Positions 1-49,577 of a DNA stretch of 64,000 nt are shown here, one piece after another. Origin of the DNA: Podarcis melisellensis (Eukaryota); NCBI GenBank assembly GCA_964234715.1, contig OZ174288.1; one strand, given 5' to 3'. Each line of letters begins with the position of its first letter. The stretch's first letter is position 1. A program made the translations under genes and the position numbers. The notes below the pieces were generated by a model. It worked only from the letters and a program-made list of their open reading frames with translations, was not told where the DNA came from and ran no database searches.

Positions 1-52
1 GGACAAATTCCTGGACAGCGTCACCCGCGTCCTGACCTCCTGCCACCGCTAG
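1..52 (+). CDS. HBA: 3' end of last exon of an alpha-type haemoglobin chain gene (partial, truncated by window edge)
   Basis: Frame starting at nt 2 reads DKFLDSVTRVLTSCHR-stop (TAG 50-52); 11/16 identical to the canonical alpha-globin C-terminus DKFLASVSTVLTSKYR with the stop at the same position; followed by AATAAA at 102. Paralog identity (alphaA, alphaD, other) cannot be fixed from 16 codons. Confidence 0.85.
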   Translation, partial: DKFLDSVTRVLTSCHR

Positions 53-101
53 GCAGGGCAAGACCGGCTCGCCCGGGCGCCCTCCCCGTCTTCTCCCTCC
101 T

Positions 102-107
102 AATAAA
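102..107 (+). terminator. Polyadenylation signal of the alpha-globin gene
   Basis: AATAAA about 50 nt after the stop, preceded by a C/T-rich tract (81-101); a second AATAAA lies at 253-258. Confidence 0.75.
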
Positions 108-1709
108 GCTATGGGCTCTTTCAACTGCAGCGCTGCGCCCTCACCTCTCTGGGGGGCGGCTGGGGGGGCTGGACGGCCCTCGACGGCGCTCCCCTCGAGG
201 CGGTCCGTAATGAATGTCACATTGCCCCGGGACCGGATGGTGAAGACTGGGTAATAAATGAGTTTATTCACCATCAAGCCTTTCCGTGCCTCGGGGAAGT
301 GGAGGACCGGCAAGCCTGCGGCTTTCCCCTCTACACCCCTGTGCTGAGAGAGAACAGCATAGAATCGCAGAATTGGAGGGCACTCCAAAGGTCATAAAGC
401 CCAACCCGCTGCAATGCAGGCACTGCAGTAAAGGGGGCATGGGATTTTTGTTGGGGGGGTAGGCCTTTTGTTAGGGGGAGCAGAACCCACGTTGGCTATG
501 CATTTATGTTGATTTCTATTGATTTAGGGGGGCAGCCCCTCTCTGGCCCCTCTTGGCTACGCCCATGAAAGGGAGGCTGCTCAAACCACCCCATCCTAGG
601 TGTTCTTTGCTTCCGCTCAATGATGGGGAGGCCAGCCCCCCCAAAAACATCCGCAGGCCGAGAAGGGCGCAGGGAGGTCTCCGCGCAGGCAGGGGGCGCC
701 TCAGGCTCCAGTCCTCCGAGATCGCGATGGCCAGAGCAATGGGGAAAGGCACGTGGCAATGGGGGGGGGCGCTGCCTCCTTCCCTATCTGCACCCAGCAG
801 CAGGCAGGCAGAAGGACCCCACCCAGGCAGCAACAGGCACAACCGCTCGGGGAGGGGCAGCAGGCCTTGGGGGGGGGGCGAGGACGACACAGATAAGGAG
901 GCCAACCCTGGGTGTCAACTACTTCTCCAGTTCCGGGGCAGGGGGGGGCTTTGTGCGAGGGTTGCAGGACCCCCCCAGGAAGCAGCGGCTCAAGGAGAAC
1001 GATGGGGACCAAAGGCCAGTTGTGGCCGAATGCTGATGCCGCCGCCTTTCCAGTTGCCCCAAGAAGGTGCAAAGGCCAGTTTGAGCTTTGGCGCAAAGAG
1101 AGGAGAGGGGGCCCGCTCCTCTTTCCCCACCTCCATGGAGTGGGGGCAGGGGCGACCATCCAAACCCCACCCCGAAGGGAAAAGCAGGGGGGGGAGGTAA
1201 ACACGTTTGGTTTTTAAAGCATTTTATTCATTTTCAAGAAAAGAATATAAACACAAATATGATCAAAACAATTGGTTTCTCCCCCCCCCCCAGAGCAGAA
1301 GACTATTATAGTGTCAAATTCTCCCATAAATCCATACACGTAGTTTGCGGGCGCCAGCCGTCAGAGAAGCTCAATTGAATGTTTTATAGAAAAAGGTGCC
1401 ATATTTCAACAAAACCACCCATATCCGAAGCATCGGTTCAGGGCATGTATTCTCTTAGCTTCTCAGATAAAGCAGTTTATACATTCTGCTTCCACTGTGT
1501 GATCTACAGGTGAGCTTCCTTTCTAGTCTCATGCTATAGGCAATCTTGCCACTACCAGAAAAAAGTGGCAAGTCCCTCTTGTGATAATTTGAGTATATTC
1601 AAATATTATTAATAAACCTAGACATGGGTTGCAATGTACATCCTGGTTTGTAATTTTGCTTATTTCTGCCAATGCAGTTTCCCAAAATGGTTGCACAAAT
1701 TCATATATC

Positions 1710-1863
1710 CATAGCTGTCAACTTTCAGATTTGGAAATAAGGGGTCAGCAGCCTCACCTGTCCCGGGGACAGTCTACGGGATATCTAACAATCCGGGATA
1801 GCAGCAGGAAACGGCGCTGGAATAAGGGAATTTCCCCCCCAAAAGGGAAGGGTGACAGCTATG
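1710..1863. mobile_element. hAT-type MITE (154 bp) nested in the L1
   Basis: Terminal inverted repeats CATAGCTGTCA...TGACAGCTATG; 8-bp target duplication CATATATC (1702-1709) / CACATATC (1864-1871), one mismatch. Confidence 0.8.
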
Positions 1864-2523
1864 CACATATCCATGACATATGGAACAATTTCTATGCCTA
1901 GGTCCTTTCCCCAATTTTGCTTAATAGTCAAGCATTGTTCAATGGCTATGTCAGTGAGTATTTTGCATAAAACCGATATTAGTTTTTGGGTGGGGGTGTT
2001 CAGTGATATTCAGAATCAGTTTTTTCAAATGTGAAAGGTCTAATTGCTTGAGATTCAGCTGTTGGGCTTGAGATAATATGTGTCACCTGATAGCCAATTC
2101 ACATTACAACCCTCAATTCTTTCCATAATTTGCTGTGAGAAAAACATCTTTTTTATAAAAGTGAATCAATCTGCACAAGCGTTTTTCTTTCCATTTCATA
2201 TCCATCAGTTTTCTATCAGACGTGTCGAAGGAGGGGTGCAATGCAAAGAAAATACGTAGAGGTGGTGCTGATTTTTATATCCAGGATCGCCAGATCTCCA
2301 ATTCTGCTTTTACAAATGGGTTTGTTATCATTACAAAAGTTTTGTTGTTATTCGAAAATGGGATGCCTGATATTCTGTGTTGCACAGGTTCATCTAATTT
2401 CAGTTGCATCCAAGTCTTCTCTTTTACACTGAATATCATACTAATGACATTCTATATATGGGCCACATCATGGTATGGTAGACCCATTTACCCTTCACTG
2501 AGAAAGCTGATTTAATACAGTTA

Positions 2524-2927
2524 CTGTATTTTTTGCCCCATAGGACGCACCTAGTTTTTTTGGGGGGAAATAAAGAAAAAAAATTTTATTTCCCCCGCAG
2601 GTGCTGGGCTGGGGCGGGGGAAGCCCGAGCTTCCCCTGACCCCAGAACAGGCTGCTATCCACAAGCCGTGGGAGAGCTGCGCGAAGCCCAAAGCCTGGGG
2701 CGTCCTGAGCTCAGCGCGCCCCAAGCTTCTGGTTGCAGGCAAGCTCTCCGCTAGCCCTGGGAGAGCTGTGCGACTTCGCGCAGCTCTCCCACGGCTAGCT
2801 TCCTGAAGCCTGGACCCCTCGCTCTCCAGGCTTCAGCGAAAGCCTGCATTCACCCCATAGGACGCACACACATTTCCCCTTCATTTTTGGAGGGGGGAAA
2901 GTGCGTCCTATAGGGTGAAAAATACGG
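2524..2927. mobile_element. Non-autonomous Tc1/mariner (Tc2-like) element nested in the L1
   Basis: TIRs CTGTATTTTTTGCCCCATAGGACGCAC ... GTGCGTCCTATAGGGTGAAAAATACGG, flanked by TA on both sides. Confidence 0.8.
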
Positions 2928-3713
2928 TAGGTGCAGACCAGGTCTCTTACTGTGATGACTCAAGCTTACATTCATTTATTTTTTTGCCATATCCTTAGAG
3001 TATTTGTTGAAATAGATAGGCTTTGAAACATATATATATATGTGGTAATATTATTTTAACCAATCCAACCTACCCTTTCAAGAGATTCAAGGTCCCTTGT
3101 ATGGTTTAAGTTTCTTAATTACTTTAGTTACATCTTTCAGCATTATTGGTACTACCAAAGAGAGCTGGTTCCATTTCGGAGATTTCACTGTTTAAATTTA
3201 TATGGAATTTAATACACCTGTGCAACAGAGCATCACATTTAAAAGTCCACAGGCATGGCATATGCACAGGGGGCGAGACAGCTCACACTCCCTGCCCCAA
3301 CTTCAAACAGCTCAATATGTTAAGGGTATTGAATTTTCTCTTGCAAAGATAAAAGAATGCCAGTTTCAGCTTTCCTTCACTCACTCCTTGCCATTTTCTT
3401 CACTTAGCATAATATATGAGATATAGTTATAAAAATTAAAAGTCAAACCAGTCAGTTTGCAGAAGAATGATGTTTCTAATTTCTTTAAGAAACTCTTGGG
3501 TTTCTTATTTCTCTTTGACCTCCCTTGCCATCCATATTGCCTGTTTCTCTCCTCCACCTGTTCTGTGTATTGGAACTCCAATTGTTCCCAAAGCTAGTTT
3601 GGCTTCAGCCAGAATGGTGACGATGGCTGGATCTACAGACGTCAAAGAAGCGATTAAGTTAAATGCGTTGTAAACTCATACAGGGAAATCAGGCAGGGAA
3701 AGACGGGACTCCA

Positions 3714-3731
3714 CAGCGCCATCTGGTGTCA
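3714..3731 (-). promoter_or_regulatory. CTCF-like motif
   Basis: Minus strand TGACACCAGATGGCGCTG closely matches the CTCF core consensus (CCACCAGGGGGCGCT). Confidence 0.55.
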
Positions 3732-3779
3732 CAGTCTTATATCGCATATACAACACTTTTCCTTTAGCTGAGCCCTATC

Positions 3780-5100
3780 AGTATTGCTATCTGCAAAATA
3801 AGTTTAAATGGGAAGCCCCATCTGTATTCCACCCCAGCAGCATGTAGGGTAGTATTTTTTGAGGTTTCTTTTTTGTAGTGGACTTTCTTCCCTTCCATGT
3901 TAAATTCCGTTCCTTCTCTTGCTACTTTCTCAATTGCTTCTTTGAAGGAGGAATGTGCCATTTTCTTCATATGCCTCCTCCATATGAAGTCTGGAGAGTA
4001 GCAACACCAGAACAGGGCCTTTTCTGCAGTGGCTCTCCGCTTGTGGAATGCTCTCCCCAGGAAGGTTCTCCTGGCGCTTTCATTATACACCTTTAGGCAC
4101 CAGACAAAAGCGTTCCTCTTTAACCAAGCCTTTGCCCTTTTAAAATGTGTTGGGGGGTGTTATTGGGTTGTTTTTGGCTTTACTTTGATTATGTATTTTG
4201 TGTTTTTATATTGCAATTTTATCCTGTGAACTGCCCTGAAATAATAAAAATTGTTGCTATTTTATCACAGGGTTGCTGTCTGGGGGGGGGGGGGCGGGGG
4301 GTGTTGCCAAAGCCTCATGCATTCTTTGTATGCAGTTTGCATTCACGCTTAAAAGTTAACGAAAAGGGCTTTCATACCTGTTTTCCGGAGCTCCTCCTTT
4401 CAGTCATAAATTATCCATTCTACTCCTATCCTCCCAGGACTCCACATGAAGTTGCAAGTCTGATGCAGTTCTAGTGAGTCTTTTAATGGTGGGTTTGTGG
4501 CATATTCCTAAATCCAAAGCTGAAGCAGGCAGTTCAGTAAATTTCGTAGGCAAGTCTTTCAATTCCATTTTTATTTTATCTCTAAAAACATTGAAGGCTG
4601 AATTCCTTTTTCCACTGCTAAATCTTTCTGTAATTGTTTTACAAGGTCATAGAAGGGCTCAAAGTCCTCTTTAGAAAGATGCGCAAGTTTCAGAGCCATT
4701 TCTGATCTCATTTCTTCCTGACCCATATCTGATCTTCCGCTGCCAAAGTATCTAAAGAAAAAATGCTCAGAAGGTATTTGGGGCAAGGTGGGCATAGCCT
4801 TTTAGCATCCTGTTCTTTCCCGGGTACCCTTTAGCTTTCAGAAGTTTGTAACAGCTGAGCAGTGCAGGCGAAGGGTTGAAACTAGAAGATTTAACAATCT
4901 TGAATGATGACATCACTACCCTCCCCAGAAAAGAAAAACGGAATAGAACTGTCCAGAACAGCTCCTCTTTGAAATGACATGTATTTCCTAGCAATTGGTG
5001 GAAAAGGCCACGTTTGTGTTACTGTGAAAAGTGTGCCTGCATTTACACAAGTAGCAGCATTGTGCAATTCTAAGGGGAACACCTTCAGAAGCTGAAATTG
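3780..5100 (-). mobile_element. Degraded L1 ORF1 remnants, with an L2 3' fragment inserted at about 3960-4250 (+)
   Basis: ORF 3764..4090 contains LHAAGVEYRWGFPFKL, typical of the L1 ORF1 C-terminal domain; coiled-coil-like ORF 4571..4795; 4015-4140 resembles an L2 3' end (GGGCCTTTTCTG..TTGTGGAATGCTCTCCCCAGG). Confidence 0.55.
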
Positions 5101-5527
5101 GCTACAAGAAACATTCACAGTGCCCAAGCAGAGCAGGCAAGGTTAGGGCAACTGACTGAAAAATTATCATTCCAACTTCTCCATCATATATATGACTTGC
5201 CCCCAAGCCACTTTGCTACCTTGAGTAGACAGATACATACCATCCTATGAGTCTGTCGTGAGGGCAGTGCCAAGTGATCACAAGTTCTTGGGAAACACAT
5301 GCAGGTAAATCCAGCCCACTTATCCCTCGGAAGAAAGAGCGTTTCCACAAAGTGGCACAAAGTGAATCGCGAAAATCGCTTCTCCAGATCTACCAAATTT
5401 AAGATGGCGCAAAGGAATCTCCAGTACAGGAAAACCGTTTAATATACAATTGATTACAGATCTGCAGTAACAAGTCAAAGTGAATGTGTATATTTACCTT
5501 CTATATACATATAGTATTTCACACATA

Positions 5528-5532
<5 letters not shown>

Positions 5533-5566
<34 letters not shown>
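5533..5566. repeat. (GT)n microsatellite
   Basis: Uninterrupted GT dinucleotide run. Confidence 0.95.
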
Positions 5567-5567
<1 letters not shown>

Positions 5568-8500
5568 TTTAGAGCCAGACATATGCAGGCTATTTACAGT
5601 TAAGCTACTGTAGTGAAGGACGGCCTTTGGCACTCCCAGCAAGCAAAACTCTGTGAAGCCACTGCCTCCTCCTCCTCCTTCTCCCCACCTGGTGTGGGGA
5701 GGGGCCTGCTCTTCCTTTCTGCAGGGAGGGCAAGACAATGTCAACCAGAGTAGTGGACGCAGAAAAGGAGGAGAAAGCTGGGTGGTTTTCTGCTCACACC
5801 TGCGCCCGCAAGTACAGAATTTGGGGCATTTCCCCATTGACGCCAATACTGCGTGGAGGCAATATTCCAGGAAAGCCCTTCTTCAAGGCAGACCAGGAGC
5901 TGATAGGCACCTGAAGGACAATACTGTGGTGTGTGTTTTTTCACAAAATGAAAGGAGTTTCAAGTTGCTTTCATCTTTTGCCTCTCCCAAGTTTCTCAGC
6001 ACACCAGGCTAAAATGATGAAAAATAGGGGAGGCTCGTTTGTGCATATCAAATACTGAAATAGTGTTGCATAGGCTGCCTAAAGGCTGGCACCCTTCTCC
6101 CCCCCCCCCCCCAGTAACTAGTAGTTTATTCAACACAAAGCCTCAGGGCCAGTAACAGCATTATCTCAAAACCAAATAAAAATATAAATACACATTAAAA
6201 TACAACCGTACATGTCTAAAACAACCCTGTAGATACTGCTGGTGAAGAACACCAGTGTGAACCGTCTTGGATGGTTTGCAGAGGAAGGACTCCCGTTCTC
6301 CACCAGGAGGAGCTTTCTGAGAAGGGAAAGTCAGGCTCCAAAGGACCAGCCCGACAGAAGGCCCCTCTCTCCAGCCCCCCCCACCCAGGGCTAAAGAAAC
6401 AAAAGGGTTGCTTTGCGTCAGCCAGGAAGAGAGAGCCAGAGGTGGCCTTGGACCCGCAAAGCTGCTTCCAGCATTTCCTGCTCAGTCACACCTGACCCAG
6501 GCCCAGGACTTGCCCTGTCCTACTGACCAATTCTTTCCAGTGGCTCTTCGCAAGTATGCAAAGCCCAGGCCGGTTAAGAGTTTCTGAATGGTATTGCCAT
6601 CAAAATAAGGAGTTGGCTTTAAATCATCAGGTCCTGAGAAGTGAAGAGCCAGGCTCCCTCTCCATGGCAGCAACCGGAGGGTGGGAAGAGGGGAGCATGC
6701 AGCCTCCGTGGCCCTAGAAGGGACCAAAGCCTTCAGCACCTCAGGGAACGGGCACCCTGGACAGAGGCAGGGGGAGTCATCCCGCGGAGACACGGCCACA
6801 GGCCTGCCACTCTGCTTGTTTAGGTGGAGTTCCCCTCCCCCATCTCGTTAAGGCTTTGGGCTTTTTATTACTTCTGTTTGTCCTCCTGACGTTGAGGCAA
6901 CAACCTTAAAGCTGCTGCCCCAAAGGGATGCTTTGGAGCCCTTGGTTTACATTGCTGCAATATTTCCAGGAAGTCATGTTTGGCTATGGCTACTGCAGAA
7001 GAAGGACACTGGCCCGGCCAGGCGGGAGAACGGCTGAAGTCAGAGAGAGGAAGGCAGGAGTGCAGCTGCGGTGCATAAACCAACCAGTATTTACACGCGA
7101 GATACACCAGCCTTAGGCTCATTTCTAAGAGGAGAAGCTAATGCCTCAGAGACCCAGGAAGTGCCTAGAAGAAATGCTTTCTGCTTTGTGATGCTTCTCC
7201 CCAGGTAAGTGGGGGGACAGGGCATATTGCAGGTATAGGCATGAGGAGCGTGGGATGGGGGGAGGAGAGAACGGGGAAGAGGCAGTAAAGAGCTCTGTGG
7301 GACACTCAGCAGGACACCAAGAGCTCCTCCTCCTACCAACTGGACCTGAGTGGGAATAAGTGCCCAGAATGCTGCCTCTCTGTGGGGCAGATGGAGGAGG
7401 AGGGGCTGGTGGCCACTGCCTTTCAGCTCACAGGAGGGGCAAGGAGAGGGTGGGCCTTCCAAGAGCAGCCAAAGTCACACAGGCGCATTTTCCTCCACCT
7501 TGCACACCCAGCCCTCAGATACCCCTCCAGCTCCTGTGGAAGAAAAAGGGAGGCCACCCATCTCATCATGTGGCTCTGCTAGGAAGCCAAATGGCAACAA
7601 GCCTCCAGTGACAAGTTAAAAGAGCCTTTGGAGAAGAAGCCAAGTGCATTGTTTCTATTTATATATAGTCAGCGGAAAGTAAGTTCTAAATAATTAAGTA
7701 GTTATTTAGTCCTTAAAAGGTGCTTTGTCTCATTGATTTCTGTAGGACTGAAGCAGGCCTCAATGAGTGCGGCTGAATAAAAAGCCTCATTTACTGCTTT
7801 CAGAGACCTTGGAGCACGGCAGGAGAACAGAACTTGCTCTCTTGGGGCACTTCCTTGTGCATCCCAAAACTTCGTTGCCAAGGAGTTGGCAGCAGAAGAC
7901 CTAGGCTTCTGCAAACCTCGCCTCCCCCTGCCTGTGCCCTCCGATATTTCCTTCTGCCACCCGACTTCCCAGCCCAACTCTAGGTAAAATATCTGTTTGT
8001 GGTGTGAGCAAGGCCCTTTTAGTGCCACGTCAATTAGCATCATTAGTTCCAGAGCCCTGGAAATAAGGCTTCTGCTGAAAAAACCCAAAATGACATCCCT
8101 GGCTCATGTCCAGCCCGATCTTCAAAGGAACAACTGCCTCCTTTGCATGCCACTGCTTGCTCCCTCACCAGGCGTGTGTATTTACCGCTAGGTAAATCAT
8201 CTTGCATTATTGCTACCAATGTAGCGCTCCAGTTTTATTGCTATAATTTTAGGCATGGTGTGATGAACCGGTGGCCCTCCAGCTGCTGCTGGGATTCCCA
8301 TCCGCCCCAGCAACGAGCCTGGCCGATGCGCAGGGGTGATGGGAATTGGAGCCTAGCAACATCTGGAGGGCTCCTTCAGGTTGCCCACCCTGCATCCACC
8401 AAGGCCTAAAGTACAGGCAACAAGCCTTCGGGGACCGTTCCACAGGCAAGCAGCAGAAGAGCTCCCTACTACCTCTGCGTAAGTATTTTGCCTGGCAAAT

Positions 8501-11276
8501 AAAATGCTTTTGGGGAGGTATGTGAAGAAGCAACGATATGCAAGATGCTTTGCAGGCAACGTCCCACTGCAGGAAACCCTGTTGTTGAGAGCAGCCCATG
8601 AATTCACACAAAGAGCAGCTGGGATGCTGCTATTTCAGCATCCAGGATGAAGCAGACACCAATCAGAGCCTTTAAAATTCAAGCTGAACATACCTTTCAT
8701 GTGCCCGGCCAGAGAAAGAGCAAGCCAACCCCTGCCCTATGACTAAAGACATCACCTGCCTGGCAGAGAGCAAGATACATTTGCCAAGGGCCTGAAGCAC
8801 CTACACAAATTTTAAAAAATGAAATAAAAGACTTCAACCATTTGAGCATTTTTTACACTGCAAAGAACTGGTCTTAGGAACATTCCCCCAAGACGGGGTA
8901 ATTGCAGTCTTTTTACAAAAGCAAAGACCCAAATTCCTTGTGGCTAGAAATCTGCAAGTTTCCAACAATTCTCACAACTGAGAGAAGCAGGTCACACATT
9001 AAGACAGTTGGCCCCAAAGCCTCTCATTCTCACAGGGCCAGATCCGCCACAAGCCACCATCCTTGCTGGCTATTATCAGTGTCCTTAAACTTCCCTCTTC
9101 TGACTTTTAGCTCTTGTGGAACCCCAGCTCTGTTCTGTATGCTGCAGATGGCCTGGAAACACCTTGGGACTAAATCAGCTCAGCAGTAGGGGAAACAGCA
9201 GTTCAGTCGAGAAACCAGAAGCTAGAATCCTGGCGATTACCTTCGGAAGTTTCTTTGATTTGACTGAGGCAAGAGAAGTTTACAAAATGATACTAATCTT
9301 CTGGAAAGCCCAACTCAGGGAACAGCCTCCTCCTACACATTTTATTCACAATTAAGTCCACTGCATACGCTGGAGTAAATGTGCTTAGAATTGCAGCCAC
9401 AGTGGAGGCTAGTACTGTACAGTACTTGGGGCTGAAGAAAGTAAGACTGTTTTTAACTACATACTGGGAACCGTTCAGCATTGTCCTCCTGGACCCAGCC
9501 TGCACTGGAAATTCACTACCCCTGTCTTGGTTCAGCCCCAAAGGCTTTTATCAAAAGATGCACGTATTACAGTGCTGCTCAGTGAGGGTGTCGGAATGTG
9601 AGACATACAGAAGAGAGTGGCCCACAGAAAAGGTATTCTATGTGCTATCAAGCAAAAGCCCCTTTATGATCATAAATTCCAGGGATGCTCTTAACAACTG
9701 AGCCAAAAGAGAGAGAGAGACTGGCTTAGTTTTAAAGAAGATTAGCATGCCAACAAAATAACAGAAGCGACCAGCTGATGAGAATGGTCATAGTTGTCCA
9801 TTTCACTCCAAAGGTCAGAACACAGGAGATGCTAGCTTTTTACTGGACCAATTTAGGTTGCAGGATAAGAAAGTGCAAGGGGAAGTATTCTATGAAACAA
9901 CAAACTTCCTAACCCTAAAGTACTTTAACCCTTTTCACGTCTTCTAAACTTGCAAAAAAGTAGAACAGCCCCTCCTTTATTCTGCATGTGTATTGTTGGG
10001 CAGATTTATGCTTGGCTACGTCACCTTTAGGTGAATCACAAAACCTGGCTGCATTAAGAGTCCAACGCGTTTGACTCTTCATTCAGTAATACAACAGGAG
10101 TGAAAATGCAAAAAAAAAAGAAAGATTGTCAACGGGAGTTCATTCTGACTGAATCCACACAATAAAGCGCCGAAGGCTTATGATCTCCCTACTCTTGTGC
10201 TTTTCAGCTCTGAACAGACTTCTCATTCCAACTCCCACAAAGGGCAAACACAGTAAGGGCGAAATATGTGCCCCAACCCTGCTAAGTCAGCCACGTCTGA
10301 CAGCTTGAGTGCTGTTGGCACCAACTGTGCCTAAAGAAAGGCTAGACTGAGTATGCAGACACGGTTAATGGGCACCTGCCTTACAATTGGCACCACTGCT
10401 TACAATCCCTACCGTCCCCACAAATACAGAATTAAGGGGGAAGGGAGGAATAAGAAGGAAGGGATAAAACCCCCATCATTTATTATCTTTCTCTTAGGCC
10501 TGACCAGATTGAGAGAAAACCGTTTCACCCAAATGCTCAGAAGTCCCTCCTGGCAGAGGTCAGAAGCGAAACACCTGAGGCTGAGATTGGCCACGCTTCT
10601 GCCGCTGGAGCACTGTGCAGCCAGCGCCAATCCCCACATGGCAGAGGCCTGTGGGGTGAATGGCAAGAGACCACACGTCCCAGAACACACAAGGGCACTT
10701 GAGTCTGATTATGGCAAGCAGAACAGCCCACGGATCACTTCAGGTAAGTGCTGGACTGCCAAGGCAAGCTCCCTGCTGCTCCTCCAGCTGCCCAGGGGGC
10801 AACTCTGCCAACTCCTCTCTCGCCTCACATCATCTTCCCTTAGTGGCTGTTTGTGTCAGTCAGGTAAACATGCATTTGTCTGTGTTTACATACAAAAGGC
10901 TTAACATAATAGGCAAAACAAAAACAAAATAGTAGTGCCAGTGAGAAACAATAAAAATGATATAACCACGGCTTATCCATCGAACGTATGGTCAACTTTG
11001 TGCCTCTGTTCCTAGACAAGGAGTCCAGCAGAGTCTATCTGAAGGCACTTGATGTCTCATCTCAGCTGAAAAACTGTTCCAAGGGGACCTGGGGGGTGAG
11101 AGAGGCACAAAAGCCCTGGCACACCAGTGACCCCCTCGGATCCCGTTGCCAAAGTGAAGTCAGATGTCAGAGCCGTCCAGCCACTCCCTCTCCTGCCCCC
11201 TCCTCCAGGAGAACACAGCCTGCTGAGAGCACCTGCGCTCTTGTAGACAGAGCAGACCACACAGCTCTCCAGCGCA

Positions 11277-12468
11277 TCATACGCTCCGCGAGTTATTCAG
11301 CTTAGTCAGCTCACTGGTCTCACCGGGACCTGCTTCTTTGCAGTCGTTTTTCTCAACAGACTTACCAAACCTACGCCCATCCTCTGGCTTCACTGTCTCT
11401 TTTGGGAGATTCTTGAAAGAGGGGAGCCCGCCCTTGAGCTCCAAATTATGGTCCGAGACGTGGGGCGTCTTGTCCAAATTCTGTACAGAAGGCACCAGGT
11501 TGGTGATCTCGTCCGTCGGAGACCGCCCAATGCTGCCATCCACTTGAACACGGATGTCTGGAGATATAGATAACTGGTGGTGGGGGACGATGCCGTTGTC
11601 CATGCACTTGGGGTACAGGAAGGTCTTCATCTGCCCTTTGCCCTTCACGTTCACCGTCCCCCTGTAATCAAAGTCATACCCCATTTTGTTCAGGATGCGG
11701 TAGCTCTCTTCACTCACCTGGATGCGACACTCCACTCCGGTCGTGTCCATCCTGCTGGCGATGTTCACAGTGTCACCCCAAATGTCATACAGGAGCTTGG
11801 TGGTGCCAATGACCCCGGCAGTCAAGGGGCCGTGGTTGAAGCCAATCCGTAGTTTGAAATTGAACCACAGCATGTTGTTGTTAAAGTCATCAACCACTCG
11901 CATCATTTCTTTGGCAAATTCGAAGAGGGTTTGCAAGTGGCCGTGCGGGCTGTTGCTGTCTTGGCACTGGGACGTGTTCAGGCCAGAGGCGGCCATATAC
12001 GTGGCCCCGATGGTCTTGATCTTCTCGATGTTGCTGTAGTCAGGCTTGCTCAGCAGCTCGTCAAAGTCCCCAATCAGTTCGTTCAGGACTCGGTAGCACT
12101 CCTTGCCTCCTTCGTAGTTCTCCTCGTAGAACTCGCTGAAGTTCACGATGCTGGCAAAGATCACGCCACCACTGTCGTGGTTTTTGGAGTAGCTCTGTGA
12201 GACTTTCAGCTGCTCCGCCACGTGGTAGGGAATGATATTCCGCAGCAGCCAGTCCGCCTGGTCCCTCATGCTCTGGATCTTGGTGCGGTGAAGGTCGGCT
12301 TCCACGTCTCCATGGTAATGCAGGCGGTAGCTCACTTCAAACTCACGGTTTAAGAACCAAACCAGGAGGAGGAGGAGGAAGAAGCCCAGAATCACTTCAT
12401 GGCCAATAAGGTCTGCTGGCCGCCTGAAGTCTTCCAAGGTTGATCGGTAGCATGGATTCCTTATGGAA
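11277..12468 (-). CDS. ADCY9: ADCY9 last coding exon (exon 11): end of extracellular loop, TM12, helical domain, C2a catalytic domain and C2b tail
   Basis: Acceptor ccag|TTCCATA; 1192 nt to TGA at 11279-11277; encodes SIRNPC..LIGHEVILGFFLLLLLVWFLNREFEVSYRLHY, KIKTIGATYMAASG, DIWGDTVNIASRM and the AC9-specific ISPDIRVQVDGSIGRSP segment. Confidence 0.98.
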
Positions 12469-13054
12469 CTGGAGTTGATTTTTTAAAGAAAATATAGACA
12501 CACGCACATACACAGAGTAAATGTAAAAAAGAAAAGAAAAAAGCATTTGTATGTTTTCTCTATTCTTATATTCCTATATTCTAATCACAAGCACACAACG
12601 TTACTCTATTTTAAAATGTTATTCTATTTTAAAATATGATTTTCTAGTCCCCCATGGCAACAGAGACAATTATGACAACTTCATATACGCAGGACCAAAC
12701 TAGACATTGTGTCATTCACACAATGGGACTCTCTTTATTTTGGAGTGGGGGGAGTGGAGATTCAGATCAGGACTGCTGTGGTGAGCAAAGATCCAGACCA
12801 CCCACCCACCCACCCTGCCTAGCTTCTTTTTCAAAAATGTTTTATTGTTTTATTCATTTCAATGGGTATATTTCAAGTAAAACATAGTTGAATAAAACCT
12901 AAAACTCTTTTGAAGTTTTATCACTCAGATACAAATCATTTAACTAAATATATGCAAACAAAACACAAAATGAGCAAACCAAATAAAATTCTGTGCTGCC
13001 ATCAAAAGGCAAACAATCGAATCCTTATTCTTCAAATATTTATTTTAGCTGGTA

Positions 13055-13280
13055 CAGTGGTACCTTAGTTTTTGAACGTAATCCATTCTGGAAGCCCGTT
13101 CGAGTTCCGAAACGGAAAACTCAATACAGAAGCCTCAAAATGGAAAACTCAATACAGAAGCCGCGTTTCATGTTTGACTTTCAAGGCGGGTTCAAAAATG
13201 AAGCATTTACTTCCGGGTTTACGGCGTTCGAAAACTGAAACTTTTGTCAACAGAGACGTTCGAAAACTGAGGTACCACTG
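13055..13280. mobile_element. Tigger/pogo-like MITE
   Basis: TIRs CAGTGGTACCT..TTTTGAACGT / ACGTTCGAAAACTGAGGTACCACTG; TA on both flanks. Confidence 0.8.
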
Positions 13281-13754
13281 TATACAGATTTAAGAGGGCC
13301 AATTGGGTCCTGATAGTATATCATGTTTCACAATTTTCTGAACCCTCTAAAAATCCCAAAATTCATTTGCAGGTTCACCACTTAAGTCATGATGTACCAG
13401 TTTTGTTCCAATACAGATTTTCTTCAATTGCTATTTACTTTCCCTCTCCCTACCACCCCCCCCCACTCTCTCTCTCACACACATACATGGATAGTGTCAC
13501 AATTAGTCACTACTTGGGTAAATCACATCATGTCCAGTTTGGTCCTCAGATGTCAAATAAAGTATTCTGTCAGAGACTCATCCCAAGTTTTCATGTGAGA
13601 GTCTGTTTAACCTTCATCTGTCACAGTTATCTGCAGATTAATATGTCTATGACTGACTAATCTAACAGCACCACTCTCTACATTTCAGAAATATGAATGA
13701 TCAAGCAAGCAAAGGAAAAACACAAAAAACTGGGAACTAGGTATCAATTCTTAC

Positions 13755-13796
13755 CTATAGTTCTGTTCTAACTGAAGATGGGAGATTTCTGTGGAG
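13755..13796 (-). CDS. ADCY9: ADCY9 exon 10, copy c (42 nt, phase 2-2)
   Basis: atttcag|CTCCACAGAAATCTCCCATCTTCAGTTAGAACAGAACTATAG|gtaaga; reads (S)STEISHLQLEQNY(S), aligning gap-free to human exon 10 SSVLTSPLDAVQNFS. Confidence 0.85.
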   Translation of the reverse strand, partial: LHRNLPSSVRTEL

Positions 13797-14358
13797 CTGA
13801 AATCCAAATATAGCAAAACATCAACAGAAATGAATAGGAGAGGTAATAATTGCAGGATTTAGTGAGCTTAATCTACATTTAGAATTTCCATTTCTTAGTC
13901 CCAGGGATTCCACTGGAGTTTTACCTATATATAGCTTGGTGGCTTCAGACATTCACCATGAAGTGATGAAAAGAATGAAGTTTGATGTTGATCAAGCCCT
14001 TAAATGGAAAACCATTTGCTTAAGTCTGAAAACAGCTACTTCTGTTCTTGCCATTATTTAGGGTGCAGACACATGGTGAGCGTTTCTTCTCCTCACTTTC
14101 GCTTCTGTGACACCACATATACCAGGCTTCAAAACTAGCACCGATGTAGGCACACACTGCATTTTTCCTTTTTTAAAAATCCAGGCAACTGTTGTATTTC
14201 TCTAGTTTATTTGGTATTTTTTTACAGTCAATTTGGTTGTTCCCGAGCTAAATTCTGAAGCAGGCTGCTGATGTCTAACTCTTTGGACATGGAGTTCAGT
14301 GTACAGTTGACCTTTTTTAGTGTTTCTAATCAATACACAAGCAAGGTTTTATAGCATA

Positions 14359-14814
14359 CAGTGGTACTTTGGTTCTCAAACGCCTTGGTACCTAAATGCC
14401 TTGGTTCTCAAACACTGAAAACCTGGAAGTAAGTGTTCTGGTTTTTGAACATTTTTCAGAAGCCGAACGTCTGATGCGGCTGTCGGCTACTGTTCCCGGG
14501 GCGCCTGCACCAATCAGAAGCTGCGCCTTGGTTTCTGAACATTTTGAAAGTTAAATGGACTTCCAAAATGGATTAAGTTTGGCGCTTTTGTTTTTGCTAT
14601 TTATTTTACATTTTTTGTCTTTGAGGCTTTTTTGGTTAATTTGTTTTTATGACTATATGGAACCCAGTTCAGCTACTGATTGATTGATTGTGTGACTGTG
14701 GAAATGGATAAAAAAAAAAACCCATCCAAGCAATGACTATCATCAGTGCAGGGATGCTTTGGTTTTGGAAAGGACTTCCAGAACGGATTAAGTTTGAGAA
14801 CCAAGGTACCACTG
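14359..14814. mobile_element. Tigger/pogo-like MITE related to 13055-13280
   Basis: TIRs CAGTGGTACTTTGGTTCTCAAAC / GTTTGAGAACCAAGGTACCACTG; TA on both flanks. Confidence 0.8.
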
Positions 14815-14944
14815 TAATAGTTTTAAATAACAGTTCTTTTAAAGCTTTCTTTTTTTAAAAAAAAAAAATTGTTATAGCACTTCATTTAAGCCTTTGAGGA
14901 GAAAGCAGAAAGTGCAAGCAAGACTGCTAGGTGTTAATGATTAC

Positions 14945-14986
14945 CTGATGTTCTGTGTAGAGTTGAAGATTTCCATGGAGCTGAAA
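14945..14986 (-). CDS. ADCY9: ADCY9 exon 10, copy b (42 nt, or 36 nt from the inner AG; phase 2-2)
   Basis: ttgcatttcag|TTTCAGCTCCATGGAAATCTTCAACTCTACACAGAACATCAG|gtaatc; reads (S)FSSMEIFNSTQNI(S); branch-point-like CTGAT upstream; nucleotide similarity to copy c. Confidence 0.75.
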
Positions 14987-16061
14987 CTGAAATGCAAGAA
15001 GCACTGGATCAGCAAGAAAATTCACAGGCCACTATTCCCTCTGCAGCAACAGCTGCTTGACAAAATGTGACTCTGCCCTGATGCATCAGTTATTGCATCA
15101 AGCATTTCTTCAGAAATGGGCAATGAGCCTCATGTATCTCTGCTGTCTCCAAGGTTGACATGTTACAGCTTCTTAGTCCGTGTCGGATAACCAGGTCTAC
15201 AATATGGTCCTTAATGTGTTTAGTTCAATTGACATGAAAAGGCCATTTTAACACCTGCATAGTGCATGTTTTATGAGGATGGAGGTTGTGTAGAACCAAA
15301 CGGGGGAAATGTTCTGGAAGGCCTGTAAACACCACCTTGGTAGCCAAGATAAATTCAGGACGAATTGGCAGTCGCTGCCAGAATCAGCTCACATTATGTT
15401 TATGCTATAGTACCCTAGCTAACAGGACCAGTGGTCAGGGATAATGAGGATTGTAGGCTGGAAAACATTTGGAGGGCCATGTTTGCCTATGCCTGGCATA
15501 AAGGCTCTGCAGGCTGCGATGTAGGCTAGTGCAGTCTAAAAATGCACTGGAATTGGCCCTTCTGGCATTTTTTACATTCTTTTTTGGTATCCCTACATCA
15601 AACCACTCACACAGGCTCTCTTTTGGGCCTGTGGATCAGGACAGTGGTAGGGCAAGCTCAGGCTGGAGGCTCCAAGTGCCCACTGACCTGAAATACAAAC
15701 TGGTCACCTTACAAATGATCTAAGTAAAAACTGGAGATAATTATCCTCCATTTGGCCGTTTCCATTTTCCTTACACCAAACAATAACGGGCAGGGTGCAA
15801 GGAACCTCAAATCCAAGCTCAAACCAAAAAGGAAAAGGCAAAGGGATCCACCTGATGGCTATCATGCAGTAAAGCATGATGACTTCAGATCCAGAGCTCC
15901 AGAGCTTCTCAGAACCATGTGAATATAAGCTGGGGGAGGGGGAGAAGGAGAAAGCAATTGTTCAAGGTCTAAAAATGCTGCTGGTTGATATAAAGACTTA
16001 GGGAAAAGGCTGCCAGGCTCAGTAATAGCCAGAAACGAAAGGAAATCCAATGAATGCTTAC

Positions 16062-16103
16062 CTAAAGTTCTTTACTGATTCAATATATGATTCCTCCACA
16101 GAG
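16062..16103 (-). CDS. ADCY9: ADCY9 exon 10, copy a (42 nt, phase 2-2)
   Basis: gcgtttttttcag|CTCTGTGGAGGAATCATATATTGAATCAGTAAAGAACTTTAG|gtaagc; reads (S)SVEESYIESVKNF(S), gap-free alignment to human exon 10; strong acceptor and donor. Confidence 0.85.
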
Positions 16104-16532
16104 CTGAAAAAAACGCAAGAGACAGACAACAACAAATCAAAAGCATGGAGGAGAAAAAGAACAGCTGCAAAAAACACCCCTCAAAAAGAGAAAAACGAAA
16201 CACCCCTCCTGGCTGCCACTCTCCAAATCTCATTCTGGGCTGCTAGATACCCATTCTGACACGGAGTTATACACCAGCCTCAATCCTCCTTCCCCCCAGG
16301 GGTTAACCACATTACTTCACAAAACGTCAAAGTATACATCTGATGGCTAAAGTGGCAGCACTTCTAATCAACAAAGACACCTGGTGAATCTGCTTCCAGG
16401 TGGATGAGCCATAAGAATACCTATTTCACTCCAGCTTCCTGATGATGGTCTCCAAGACCCTCACTGGGGAAAAGACACTGTCCCAACTCACAGGCAACAG
16501 GCAGGCAGCACCAGTTTTCCTCAAAGGCTCAC

Positions 16533-16681
16533 CTGTCAGGGCACAGAGGCACCCACAGCAAAACTAGCAAGACTCCTCCAACAAGAGTGGCCAGAGATGA
16601 TCTCATCCAGGAGCTGAGCTGGCAGAAGTTACAGTACTGGACAATAGTGATGAGAATTGCAGAACACATAAACATGGTATA
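16533..16681 (-). CDS. ADCY9: ADCY9 exon 9 (149 nt)
   Basis: ttgcag|TATACC...GACAG|gtgagc; YTMFMCSAILITIVQYCNFCQLSSWMRSSLATLVGG..LCPD. Confidence 0.95.
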
Positions 16682-16826
16682 CTGCAACAAACAGAAACAG
16701 CAGCTATTAGTCATATATGATCTATTGGAATGGGATGTCTAAGTAAATGCACAGGAATCCACTTTTTTCTTTTTTTAATGGCTGTGGCCACGAAACCAAT
16801 ATTTCACTAGTCATTATGCCTCCCCT

Positions 16827-17114
16827 CAGGGCCGGATTTAGGTTTGATGAGGCCCTAAGCTTACTGAAGGTAATGGGGCCCTTTATATGTCCAGCTGTCC
16901 TTTGTCAGCAACAAATTGTCACTGTTTATTGTGTTGAATATATGCTATATTTATGGACCTACACTGCTGCTATATGTAGGTTTTATTTTATTTGTTTTTA
17001 TCTTATATTTTGGAAATGTACATCCAGGTTTTTTCCGTAAAATTTTTTTTGGGGCCCCAAGAGAGTGGGGCCCTAAGCTATCACTTGTTTAGCTTACATG
17101 TAAATCTGGCACTG
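16827..17114. mobile_element. hAT-type MITE in ADCY9 intron 8
   Basis: TIRs CAGGGCCGGATTTA / TAAATCTGGCACTG with a perfect 8-bp TSD CCTCCCCT (16819-16826, 17115-17122). Confidence 0.85.
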
Positions 17115-17520
17115 CCTCCCCTCTTCAGGCTCACAACACCGCTCACTCCATTTAACGTACGTTGGCTTCACATGCAGTCAGCCTCTCCATTGCTGCCTAC
17201 TCTCTCTCCTTTGAAGAATGAAGCACCCCATAGCCAGCTCACTGGAATTGGCGGGCCCTAGCCTGCTAGGCACTTCCTTTCCCATCTCCCTCAGCACTGC
17301 TTCCAACTCCTCTTGGGAAGAAAGCAACCTGCATACTTTTGGGTCCCCAGGGAAGATCTACCCACCAACGTTTCTGGTAACTGAATTTTGAAAGAAAGAA
17401 GGAAAGCGAGAGAGCCAACTTGTGGTTCTCAATCTCGATCCTCTACCTGCTTCCTCCCAGGATATAGCGGGAGCACAGAAAAACCAGTCCAGTCATGGGA
17501 TTCAGCAATGTATGACTTAC

Positions 17521-17680
17521 ATAAATGTTTGTTTCAAATTCCAAGCTGAAGTGTGAGAAGACTGCGACAGCGGGGAGGGAGATCCAAACGGCACCAATGA
17601 AGTGTCGCGGCAACCAGCCGGCAATCCCCTCCAACAACCGTTTTGTGCAAGCCATTACGTCCTCCAGAAAGAACACCATT
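17521..17680 (-). CDS. ADCY9: ADCY9 exon 8 (160 nt)
   Basis: ttttcag|AATGGTG...ATTTAT|gtaagt; MVFFLEDVMACTKRLLEGIAGWLPRHFIG. Confidence 0.95.
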
Positions 17681-18190
17681 CTGAAAACAACACACATCCA
17701 AGTCAGGCAGTGTGGCCGCTTCTATCTATGACAGAACTGAGCCTAGAAAGGCAAAGGAGCGGAGGGGAATGGTTTTGCAAGTCTCTCTGTATAGCTGCCA
17801 CTTCACGGGCCTCTACGCAGGGAAATGGCATGCTTGATTTCCTCTTAATCAGACTAGCAGCGGCAGCCCCGCCATTTTGCTGGATCCTGTTCTCTTCCCT
17901 TTTCTGTCACGTTCTCACCTTTAGGGTGCCTTACATGTTTAATTATGTCCAAAGCGACCCGTGGGTTTTGCCTGGCCTAGGGTGGACCACTAGTACAAAT
18001 CTGAGAGTCCTGGCTCACCTCTAAGTGGTGAAAGGAGGAGTCTGTTTCCCATACAGCAGAGCTACGAAGGCCCTCACAGAACTCTCTGTCCCATTCTTAG
18101 CTATGCCCATTTCAAACCCAAGAAGCAGGCCCTGCCTCTGCTGCTATCCTACGCGCCCTGTGAGAGTGATCCAGAGTCTGCCTCATTTAC

Positions 18191-18399
18191 CTAATGGAGA
18201 CGATAAGGGACAGCACCTCTAGCAGGATGGCAATGACCACCACAACCACTGCTGCAGGCGGGGGAGGAGTTGCAGCCATCCCATGCTTCAGGAAGCAGGT
18301 GACAGAGAGGATGAGGAAGACGGTTGTGGACAGCAAAACATCCAGAAGGGAACTAAAGGTAGCACTGGCGAAGGTCTTCACGGGGGTGTTCCTCATAAC
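18191..18399 (-). CDS. ADCY9: ADCY9 exon 7 (209 nt)
   Basis: aaacag|GTTATG...ATTAG|gtaaat; VMRNTPVKTFASATFSSLLDVLLSTTVFLILS. Confidence 0.95.
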
Positions 18400-19434
18400 C
18401 TGTTTCAGATAAAGGCAAAAAGAACAGAATGAGACAGTGCACCAATATGTGGGTGCCCTCTTTCTTGGTTGTCTTTTAAGGAGAGTCAAATCCATTGTAG
18501 GCATTTCTGTCAAATACGATGGCACAGACAGAGCTTTTGGGGGTAGGAGACAGAAGGAAGGTGTTACATTATTTAATAAAATGTATATACCACCTGTTCA
18601 ACTGAAGACCTCCAAGCTATTTACAAAGAGCAATATAATATTTTTTTAAAAACACAGATATAAAACAAACAATACAATTTTTTAACATATAAATAACTCA
18701 TCACTGATTCTGTCCATTTGTATGCTTTATTTCCTTGGGTTAAAAAATTCTCTTTTTTACCCTCCTTTGGCCTTCCTTCAGTATAATAGGGTAAAAAGGA
18801 TGTTTTTTTAACCCAAGGAAATAAAGCGTACTATTTCTGTTCTTCCCAGCAAGCTTCCCCCCCCCATTCCTGTCCTCAATCTTCTTGCTTTCCTTCCTTC
18901 CTTTCCTCCCATCCTCTTACTGCACCTCCACACTCCATCCTCTAGGCTCCGCTTTGCCCCAAACTGTCACCCTTACCTGCTTTCTTGTTCTCAGCTTGGG
19001 AAATGCAGCCAGCTGCCTTTTCATTCTTCAGCTGTGTGCATTCCTCAGCTCTGACTGCATTGCTAGGAGCTCTCCTTCCAGGAGGCCACTCAGTCCAGCT
19101 GCCAGCTGCTAAGTTGCCTTCGGACAGTATCTTATATCCCACACTCTCAACAGCAACTTATTGCAGTGCTGAATGCAGGGGGCAGCTGCACCTTTGGGGT
19201 CTTCAAAAGGCCCTGTGAGGGGACTATTCACCAGAACCAGTGATAGTGTAACAAAACACGAGGGATTTCAGCGACGCAAATTTAGACTGGATATTAGGAA
19301 CTACCTTACAAACAATTTAAGAAGAGGCAAAGCTCCCATGACTGTTGAGAAACTCCCCCAGGGTAACAGTGCATGTTCAGGATGGTTTAGGGATGGAGAA
19401 CCTTTACAGTGTGATGGACCTTTGTCCTATCTTT

Positions 19435-19745
19435 TGCCTACATAAAGGATGTTCAGGTGCTGTCACACAAAAGATGGAGCAGGCTCATTTTCTCCTGCTC
19501 CAGGGTAGGACTCAAACCCATGGCTTCCAGTTACAAGGAAGGAGATTCCGACTCAACATCAGGAAGAACTTTCTGACAGTAAAGAGCTGTTCAGCGGTGG
19601 AATGGATTCCCTTGGACTCACTGGAGGTTTTTAAGCAGAGGTTGGATGGCCATCTGTCATGGATTCTTTAGTTGAGCTTCTTGCATTGCAGGGGGGTGGC
19701 CAAAGGACCCTTGGGATCCGTTACAACTCTGCAACTCTATGGTTC
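19435..19745 (+). mobile_element. CR1 LINE 3' fragment
   Basis: Encodes GRRFRLNIRKNFLTV..LEVFKQRLDGHL, the CR1 ORF2 C-terminus, followed by the CR1 3' UTR. Confidence 0.8.
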
Positions 19746-20122
19746 CTGCAACAGCGTATGGTTCTCTATCCTTAAACCATCCTGGCATCAAGTTCAGTAA
19801 CTGCCCAAAAAGGAACCGAGTCCTAACCATCACATCCTCCAAAACAACTCATAAAAGCCACAGACATGAAGGAGTTAAGCATCTCTCTCCCCTCCTACAA
19901 AGCTCCAAATGTATGTTCAGAAGTATGAATTCAGAACCCTGGGGAAAAAGCAACCAGGCTGGGTGAGATTAAGGGCAGAGGACAACGACAAAGCACCCCT
20001 CCCTCCACAAAACGCAACACTCCAGGACTACTTTTCAGTGAAAAATGAAAAATTAGCACTTCATTAGTTTGCTTCTCAGAGACAACCAGAACATACACAA
20101 CACACAACACACACAAACACAC

Positions 20123-20225
20123 CTCTTCTTGATAGCTGCTCCTATAGTTCATCTCCAATTCCTGATCCAGGAAGTTCAGGCTCAGTCTGTTAATGGGCGG
20201 CTTAAAAAAATAGTCTTTCATCAAG
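20123..20225 (-). CDS. ADCY9: ADCY9 exon 6 (103 nt)
   Basis: tctag|CTTGATG...GAAGAG|gtgtgt; LMKDYFFKPPINRLSLNFLDQELEMNYRSSYQEE. Confidence 0.95.
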
Positions 20226-21369
20226 CTAGAGGAAGAATGGAAAAGAGTTTACTTCTGCACAGTTATCATTTGAAGAAACAATTCCTAATGTTCCATTTCC
20301 AGGTTACTTCTTGGTTGAGCAACTGCTCTTAGTCTCTCACTATTCGGTATCTGTGTCCACACAAGGAAGGAAGGCAGTGCTCAGAATATTTCCATCAGGT
20401 AGACAGAGCCAATTCTAATTTTGTCCCTATCCTCCCCCCTACTGGATTGTGTAACGACAACACTGAGACAGAGGAGGAGGAGGAAGAAGCTGACAGTGTG
20501 TGCTACCTGCTGGACTGTGAAGTAAGAAAGCAGGCAGGCAGGCAGGCAGGCAGGGACTGGCTGAGGGAGATTCTGGCATTGCAGGTGGTTGGACTACCAG
20601 CCTCCAGCGGAGATACAATTACGGTGAAGCATAACAGCAGAATGATCCACCTATGTCTTGCAGGTAACTCGACTTCTGAGACAACCCCCCTTCTATATGG
20701 GAAATGTGGTCCCATGTTGTCCCCAAGGACTGCACACACGACTTGCACCATTTACAGATTTAAAGTCTCACCACGGATGGCACGAACGTCCTGCAAGTTA
20801 TGAGGTGGCATGTTACTTCCTTCATGCACAGACCTATTGTGTTTTAATTTGTTGGAAGCTGCCCAGAGGGCCTGGGGGAACCCAGTCAGATGGGCGGCAG
20901 AAAAATAATTTCCGTTTACACTAAGATGGGGAGCAAGCCTGTGCGGCAAAATGTAAACCCAATTTGCACAAACTGTTGGGGTATGCACAAATGGCAGAAC
21001 CTACTGGAAGATTAAGATGTTGCATACCATCTTTGCAACACCCATACAAGGTAGCCCAGTATTATTATCCACACATGCCGATGGAGGACAAAGGCTGAGA
21101 GATGAGTAACCTAGCAAGTTAATGCAGAACATGAATTTAGAACTGGGAACTACTTTGCTCCCAACTCCTGCTCACAGCCACTCTATCACACCAGGTCTCA
21201 GGTATGCTGCTGTGCCCACTAGGGTGGGAGAAACGCCAAACCCCCTGGAGAGACCAGCTGCTTCGCTGGGGCTTGAATGCTCATGGCCAACTGCCCACCT
21301 CACAAGGCGCTGCTTAGACAAAGCTCACAGTCACCTCCTGAAAATATTTAAAAACTGTGACTAGTTATT

Positions 21370-32368: not shown

Positions 32369-32970
32369 GGCCCTCCGAGCGCGCCCTTCTCCCTAGGCAG
32401 CGGCTCTCAGCGCCGGCCGCCCGCGCCGCCTCCGCCGCCCGCGCCGCCTCCGCTGCCGGGGTTCTGGGTGCCGCCGAAGACCGCGCTGCTGGGGCTCCCG
32501 CCAGGCCGCTCCGGACCCCGCCGCATGGCGCTGCGCCAGGGCCGCGCCTCCCTCACGGCGGGCCGCTCGGCCGCATCGCCCGCCTCCCTGCAAGCGCCTC
32601 ACAGGCCGCGGCGCCGGCTCGGCCGCCCTCGGGGGAAGAAGAAGAAGCAGCAGCAGCAGCGGGGCGAGGGCGGAGGCGGCTGTCACTGAGGCGCGCGGCG
32701 CAGGCGCGCTCGGGAGGGAGGGAGGGAGGGAGGCGGGGACTCGCGGGCGCGCGCACAGGAGAGACCCCGGCGGGGCGCGCGCGGCGGCGGCGGCCGCGGC
32801 GAAGAATCCGTGACCAGAAGCCGCGCTGCCCACTGCGCAAGCGCCCGCGAGATGGCGCGCAGGCGCACGCTTGTCTTGCGCGGCCAAGTTTCCCGCCTTT
32901 GGTCTCCTCCCTCGCCTCAGCGCCCCTCCCCCCCGCGGCTTCTCGTGAGGAAAAATTAGATGGCGGGAGC
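31540..32970. promoter_or_regulatory. CpG island and ADCY9 promoter
   Basis: Extremely GC- and CpG-rich; three NRF1-type GCGCnnGCGC motifs (32698, 32835, 32857), E2F-type TTTCCCGC (32889), GC boxes; no obvious TATA box. Confidence 0.85.
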
Positions 32971-49394: not shown

Positions 49395-49577
49395 NNNNNN
49401 NNNNNNNNNNNNNNNNNNNNNNNNNNNNNNNNNNNNNNNNNNNNNNNNNNNNNNNNNNNNNNNNNNNNNNNNNNNNNNNNNNNNNNNNNNNNNNNNNNNN
49501 NNNNNNNNNNNNNNNNNNNNNNNNNNNNNNNNNNNNNNNNNNNNNNNNNNNNNNNNNNNNNNNNNNNNNNNNNNNNN
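49395..49577. other. Assembly gap (183 N)
   Basis: Run of n, preceded by a purine-rich, probably LINE-derived tract (about 48400-49394). Confidence 1.

Follow-up and report, generated by a model that had tools for sequence, protein, structure and literature searches.

The stretch of DNA analyzed here (the window) comprises 64,000 nucleotides of Podarcis melisellensis (contig OZ174288.1 of assembly GCA_964234715.1) and opens with the last 16 codons of exon 3 of an alpha-A-like globin paralog, at positions 2..49 of the plus strand. The translation of these codons, DKFLDSVTRVLTSCHR, matches haemoglobin alpha chains gaplessly over residues 126-141 and ends in SCHR, since the codons TGC CAC (41..46, plus strand) specify Cys139 (HC1) and His140 (HC2), positions at which other alpha chains show Lys or Arg and then Tyr. 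A TAG stop codon follows at 50..52 on the same strand (TAA in organism D, one of the species represented by the contigs discussed below), and behind it lies a C/T-rich 3' untranslated region (53..121, plus strand), 65 of whose 69 positions match Lacerta. The poly(A) signal AATAAA is located at 102..107 (plus strand) and is kept in both Lacerta and Rhineura. The likely cleavage and poly(A) site is at 117..125 (plus strand), where a 186-nt contig from organism F (X18) terminates at window position 121; we infer that this contig end, coming from a transcriptome-sized run, is the RNA end. The translation of 2-49 and the AATAAA at 102-107 confirm the preliminary description of this sequence, which had reported an alpha-globin C-terminus reading SCHR with an intact poly(A) signal. 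The two upstream exons and the initial 77 nt of exon 3 are 5' of the window start, and a six-frame motif scan of the 64-kb window found no other globin exon, so the window begins inside the last exon. An Rfam search of the window returned no match.

Tail to tail with the globin gene lies ADCY9, whose last coding exon (11277..12437, minus strand) has a Pfam Guanylate_cyc match and provided the synteny anchor for this work. Antisense to ADCY9 exon 1 (30485-32368, minus strand) runs a 689-codon open frame (30620-32689, plus strand; 54-63% GC) with no Pfam match, which is most likely a by-product of composition. Upstream of ADCY9 and on the same strand, the corresponding locus of Podarcis raffonei (L001, 1-1946) carries a sarcalumenin-like gene with EHD_N and Dynamin_N domains (953 residues), and a 476-codon ORF without a Pfam match in the window (51654-53084, minus strand) may be the large first exon of such a gene. 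A run of 183 N occupies 49395-49577. Two small features were observed closer to the globin gene. Twelve letters, GACTTCGGAGGA, are present after window position 175 in an independent sample of Podarcis melisellensis, in another species of the genus and in Lacerta but absent from the window, whose non-coding sequence therefore has either a 12-nt deletion allele or a minor assembly difference at this point. At window 358-400, many short contigs from the whole-genome run pile up to a depth of up to 192 and continue into unlike sequence, a pattern that marks a dispersed repeat directly downstream of the globin gene.

The preliminary description had named AAGTAC, in place of TGCCAC, as the reading that would betray an assembly error. 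That the unusual codons are an assembly or sequencing error for AAGTAC is extremely improbable. A 1741-nt contig of the same species from another study and sample (X6) spans window 1-400 with no mismatch before position 202, and its identity at TGC CAC excludes an assembly slip. TGC CAC is likewise retained in contigs of two further species (X15 from organism D and X18 from organism F) and in the Lacerta agilis reference, and the AAG to TGC replacement alone requires three base changes.

The penultimate Tyr, which the preliminary description had called nearly invariant in vertebrate alpha chains, does prove to be so among the sequences compared: it occupies position 140 in 27 of 27 aligned sauropsid alpha chains, where the window has His140 with Arg141 kept, and every full-length alpha chain among the 120 database matches listed ends in Tyr-Arg. 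At codons 139-140 the Lacerta ortholog reads TGC CAC, the Rhineura gene AGG TAC and a second, canonical Lacerta copy AAG TAC, and the SCHR tail is the same in Lacerta and three Podarcis species. In organism E (contig X17), C>T changes at 44 and 46 produce TAT (Tyr) and therefore the tail SCYR. Lacerta is the more distant relative, with 87% identity to the window over the first 200 nt as compared to 94% for organism E, and has His. By parsimony, His140 would thus be the older state and the Tyr of organism E a reversal, which holds only if organism E is nested among these species.

Residues outside 126-141 were read from the Lacerta agilis ortholog of this gene rather than from Podarcis melisellensis itself, and the ortholog was reached by way of ADCY9. 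A search with the ADCY9 first-exon ORF led to full-length ADCY9, and a profile built from ADCY9 and two window exons led to Podarcis ADCY9 proteins. The ADCY9 locus of Podarcis raffonei (L001) is 95% identical to the window and ends at about window position 1134, roughly 1.1 kb short of the globin gene. The ADCY9 locus of Elgaria has a 142-codon alpha globin 8.4 kb beyond the ADCY9 stop codon. A protein search with exon 2 of the Elgaria gene returned no lacertid among the 120 matches listed, and a profile combining the Elgaria tail with the window's 16 residues retrieved XP_033023746.1 (P0400 in our set), annotated as "hemoglobin subunit alpha-A-like [Lacerta agilis]" and ending in LDKFLCSVAHVLTSCHR. 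Window 1-10234 is collinear with 10621-20672 of the Lacerta locus (L003) at 86-90% identity, with window position 1 equivalent to L003 10621, and the window's coding tail corresponds to L003 10621-10669, the end of the XP_033023746.1 gene. Judged by this collinearity and level of identity, XP_033023746.1 is the ortholog of the window gene. The profile search that retrieved the Lacerta protein found no Podarcis protein with an SCHR tail, which could mean that Podarcis genome annotations do not call the gene coding.

The Lacerta gene is made up of three globin exons of 95, 205 and 129 nt (L003 10001-10095, 10225-10429 and 10544-10672) separated by GT-AG introns, and its 142 codons yield a translation identical to P0400. 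No premature stop, frameshift or splice defect was found in it, nor in the 16 codons that the window covers; the exons that the preliminary description had proposed to assemble are thus present in the ortholog and read through without frameshift or stop. P0400 matches the Pfam Globin family PF00042 at 5.3e-24 and human alpha without gaps at about 1e-41. Its AlphaFold model has a mean pLDDT of 82, dropping to its lowest values (~60) along the F helix and at the FG corner, and superimposes on solved alpha chains with TM scores of 0.90-0.92. An identity as globin Y or cytoglobin was considered and rejected, as the best matches are haemoglobin alpha chains, gapless over 138-140 residues.

The residues of the Lacerta protein (in human alpha numbering) fall into a kept and a changed set. 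Proximal His87 (F8), Phe43 (CD1), Tyr42, Val62 (E11), Leu91, Pro95, Asp126, Lys127 and Arg141 are kept, while distal His58 (E7) has become Leu, Arg92 Gln, Asp94 Ser and Asn97 Ser, and Phe46 has become Leu, Lys139 Cys and Tyr140 His. Of the three landmarks that the preliminary description had singled out for inspection, the proximal His and Phe CD1 are therefore in place and the distal His is not. Position E7 is His in 27 of 27 other chains. Likewise, the alpha1beta2 switch positions 92/94/95/97, invariant as Arg/Asp/Pro/Asn in the 27 others, read Gln/Ser/Pro/Ser in Lacerta. Among the 35 sites that are invariant in the 27 other sauropsid alpha chains, seven (20%) are changed in the Lacerta SCHR protein, as compared to zero or one in nearly all other chains and three in one odd 137-aa entry. 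By the contact lists that we assume for human haemoglobin, 14 of 17 haem contacts are kept, four of 11 conserved alpha1beta2 sites are changed, and one of six alpha1beta1 sites is changed. The Lacerta SCHR protein has five Cys, the highest number in the set compared.

A second alpha-A gene adjoins the ortholog in Lacerta. It lies head-to-head with the SCHR gene, 2.4 kb upstream (L003 6998-7629, minus strand), and is canonical throughout, with a distal His, the motif LRVDPVNF and an SKYR tail. More broadly, alpha-A-type globins are found between ADCY9 and a claudin-like (PMP22_Claudin/GSG-1) gene in Sceloporus, Elgaria, Rhineura, Lacerta and Podarcis (window 1-33000; loci L002-L006). In Sceloporus, ADCY9 is followed by a single alpha-A gene on the same strand and then by the claudin-like gene; in Elgaria, three tandem alpha-A genes on the same strand stand between the two. 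Rhineura has a single canonical alpha-A gene that is inverted and converges on ADCY9 as the window gene does, and Lacerta has the canonical copy in the old orientation together with the inverted SCHR copy, the one closest to ADCY9. The Rhineura and SCHR genes are collinear, and this extends to two short promoter blocks.

This site between ADCY9 and the claudin-like gene differs from the arrangement in geckos, where alpha-A has alpha-D and globin Y as its neighbors. That alpha-A stands apart in the anole assembly was put down to an assembly fault by Hoffmann et al. 2018 (PMC5786229); this separate placement may be real. The three tandem 142-codon genes of Elgaria multicarinata (L006 5674-10666 and L002 36523-37190) all have canonical residues, and the L002 gene differs from the protein P0270 at three residues. 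A single HBA1 copy has been stated for (land) reptiles (PMC12504858), a statement that the Elgaria and Lacerta loci contradict.

In a protein tree with one alpha-D outgroup, the SCHR gene falls within the squamate alpha-A clade rather than with alpha-D (support 80/82), on an end branch of 0.62, where the canonical Lacerta copy has 0.30 and the median is 0.11. The preliminary description had taken the gene for an alpha paralog and had suggested a sauropsid globin tree for placing it; the long branch inside the alpha-A clade and the canonical SKYR gene beside the Lacerta ortholog both bear this out. AU tests rejected neither the canonical Lacerta copy nor the Rhineura gene as sister of the SCHR gene (p = 0.13 and 0.11), so these tests do not place the sister group and the age of the duplication rests on synteny. 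On the evidence of position and sequence, the gene is an old, inverted alpha-A paralog. The inverted copy would have arisen beside ADCY9 before the split between lacertids and worm lizards, as suggested by synteny. Worm lizards would then have retained only the inverted copy, which is still canonical there, and lacertids would have retained both, the copy in the old orientation staying canonical and the inverted copy diverging into what is now the window gene.

With two alpha-A genes side by side, the window gene could be the usual major adult alpha-A of wall lizards and be lineage-specific only at its C-terminus. The NCBI name of the ortholog (alpha-A-like) and its grouping with squamate alpha-A genes would fit such a reading, which we nevertheless regard as very unlikely. 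A fully canonical alpha-A adjoins the ortholog in Lacerta, and the ortholog itself has lost the distal His and alpha1beta2 residues, so that more than the C-terminus is altered. In a study of Eremias, alpha-A was the main alpha chain by mass spectrometry, and its theoretical mass of 14,903 Da (~14.9 kDa) is close to the 14,939 Da that we computed for the canonical Lacerta protein without Met1 and not to the 15,274 Da of the SCHR copy, which argues that the major adult chain is of the canonical type. Eremias haemolysates are not reported to contain a peak around 15.3 kDa. The Eremias argus study also lists unassigned haemolysate peaks at 14,938.9 and 14,939.1 Da, and the canonical Lacerta copy has a mass of 14,939.1 Da; this match may be a coincidence across species or may reflect a further canonical chain of alpha-A type that was not cloned in that study.

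The preliminary description had left two alternatives for the gene, a functionally divergent paralog or a gene under relaxed constraint, and our results support them as a pair. As read in Lacerta, the copy has retained its frame, splice sites, promoter blocks, 3' untranslated region and poly(A) signal, and we lean, somewhat better than evenly, toward a maintained, functionally shifted haemoglobin chain. Relaxed constraint is the less probable of the two but a serious contender. On that account the gene would be heading to a pseudogene and perhaps be transcribed without giving a useful protein, like primate theta-globin, the odd residues being drift and the Lacerta frame a remnant.

Much of what bears on this question comes from the pattern of substitutions. 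Coding sequences of the canonical Lacerta copy and of the Rhineura and Elgaria genes were spliced together from their loci for translation, distances and trees, and a least-squares split of the distances on the four-gene tree assigns ~85 substitutions to the SCHR branch. There is no indel in the 429-nt coding sequence among the four genes, whereas the Podarcis-Lacerta flank has 116 gap openings per 675 mismatches. At even one third of the flank indel rate, ~85 substitutions would be expected to come with more than four indels, and none is seen. That the Lacerta gene has come through these substitutions without indel, stop or splice defect thus speaks against relaxed constraint, although the stop-free frame by itself says little, given that only ~1.8% of single changes create a stop in this GC-rich coding sequence. 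Against decay also stand the proximal His and 14 of 17 haem contacts kept in Lacerta, the SCHR tail that is identical in Lacerta and three Podarcis species, and the promoter blocks common to the SCHR gene and Rhineura. The 3' untranslated region points the same way, with a Lacerta identity (65/69, 94%) above that of the coding tail (44/48) and of the further flank (86-87%). Within Podarcis, the tail has 2 changes in 147 nt and the flank 24 in 522 nt (Fisher p = 0.09).

The rates of amino acid change favor relaxed constraint instead. In the 16 codons, Lacerta and Podarcis differ at four nucleotides, all four differences altering the amino acid, and the same least-squares split gives a branch dN/dS near 1 (~1.0) for the SCHR gene as compared to 0.5-0.8 for canonical genes, with all of these values inflated and dS unreliable at a GC3 of 0.96. 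Pairwise dN/dS is 0.75-1.03 for all squamate alpha-A pairs, canonical ones included, with dS only ~0.4, and is uninformative, as G or C is maintained at synonymous positions. On the SCHR branch, invariant sites have changed at roughly the rate of an average site, and the 20% of otherwise invariant sites that are altered include the distal His and key allosteric contacts.

Evidence on expression and protein is divided as well. The gene occurs in contigs of three transcriptome-sized runs (40-80 million contig letters, the RNA label of a run being a guess), one of these contigs terminating at window 121, where cleavage behind AATAAA would be expected. This would count against decay, and such contigs reveal neither splicing nor expression level. 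In keeping with relaxed constraint, the protein search brought up no SCHR-tailed protein from Podarcis, and the mass of the SCHR copy is not matched in Eremias blood. A preprint on Iberolacerta found four of five lacertid alpha genes expressed in adult Iso-Seq data, without specifying the silent one, and, by RELAX, purifying selection that is weaker on alpha-A genes than on alpha-D genes; both observations would suit a gene under reduced constraint.

If the gene is a maintained, functionally shifted chain, its residues allow some predictions. The protein is predicted to adopt the globin fold and bind haem, with the proximal His, Phe CD1, Val E11 and 14 of 17 haem contacts kept, and pairing with a beta chain is probable because alpha1beta1 residues are largely kept. 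With Tyr140, Arg92, Asp94 and Asn97 replaced, the normal C-terminal and alpha1beta2 contacts that stabilize the low-affinity T state would not be possible. Leu at E7 would make the distal pocket apolar, with no hydrogen bond to bound O2 and no water of the ferric form, and the five Cys of the Lacerta protein would supply extra surface thiols. As such, one would expect a minor chain, weakly cooperative or non-cooperative and with altered ligand and redox behavior, rather than a standard oxygen carrier. Squamates have lost the embryonic alpha-E gene (PMC5786229). One speculative scenario, which we consider unlikely, is that the inverted alpha-A duplicate was recruited as a stage- or stress-specific chain that forms with beta a non-allosteric haemoglobin with an apolar pocket and exposed thiols, serving embryonic oxygen uptake or the handling of NO, sulfide or redox stress rather than adult transport. 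Were this so, a stage-specific role would account both for the silence of one of five alpha genes in adult Iso-Seq data and for the conserved frame, promoter blocks and 3' untranslated region.

Few proteins are understood as well as haemoglobin alpha, and the distal His, the penultimate Tyr and Arg92-Asp94-Asn97 are textbook invariants of its oxygen binding and cooperativity. Compared to squamate alpha-A genes, the SCHR gene has the same three exons and 142 codons, globin fold, proximal His, Phe CD1 and C-terminal Arg, the same site between ADCY9 and the claudin-like gene and the same clade placement, and differs in its Leu E7, Gln92, Ser94, Ser97, Cys139 and His140, its five Cys and its long end branch, roughly double that of its canonical neighbor in Lacerta and over fivefold the median. 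Extra alpha-type genes beside the adult genes, with an intact frame, an uncertain product and weaker constraint, are also represented by theta-globin (HBQ1) and mu/alpha-D (HBM). These mammalian genes keep the distal His, and their origin is independent of that of the lizard gene, which is an inverted alpha-A duplicate of lacertoid lizards.

Haemoglobin Rouen, a human variant with raised oxygen affinity, has the identical replacement of Tyr140 by His at HC2. It is listed as alphaY140H (PMC4526547) and is a single change in an otherwise normal chain, whereas the lizard protein has many more; loss of the distal His should act on O2 binding in the direction opposite to that of Tyr140His. Engineered human mutants have been made at the same positions (E7 Leu, Tyr140, Arg92 and Asn97), and solved structures of T-to-T-high mutants exist for each of the T-state contact residues concerned. 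PDB entries 3qjb (human alpha H58L) and 1y0a, 1xz7 and 1y09 (the alpha1beta2 alanine series) are among the best structural matches to the P0400 model. Haemoglobin with Leu E7 folds and binds haem, lacks the coordinated water and loses haemin more readily (bioRxiv 10.1101/726216). The laboratory mutants are single changes; the lizard gene combines such changes naturally, and its tail combination is common to two genera. At E7, Gln has been reported in some reptile HBA1 and many HBAD sequences by a study that lists no Leu (PMC12504858); Gln can hydrogen-bond the ligand, which the Leu of the lizard chain cannot.

The gene model XP_033023746.1 is already public, and alpha clusters of five genes in lacertids are described in the Iberolacerta preprint. 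What is new is the residue pattern and history of the gene rather than its existence, and the literature searched gave us no mention of Leu at E7, of a tail reading SCHR or of the altered contact residues. The comparison also corrects the assumption of a single reptile HBA1 copy (PMC12504858) and, should the separate placement of alpha-A in anole be real, that of an assembly fault (PMC5786229). An alpha-type gene that replaces textbook invariants while keeping its frame, the haem side of the protein and its regulatory blocks amounts to a natural experiment on the potential of the alpha chain.
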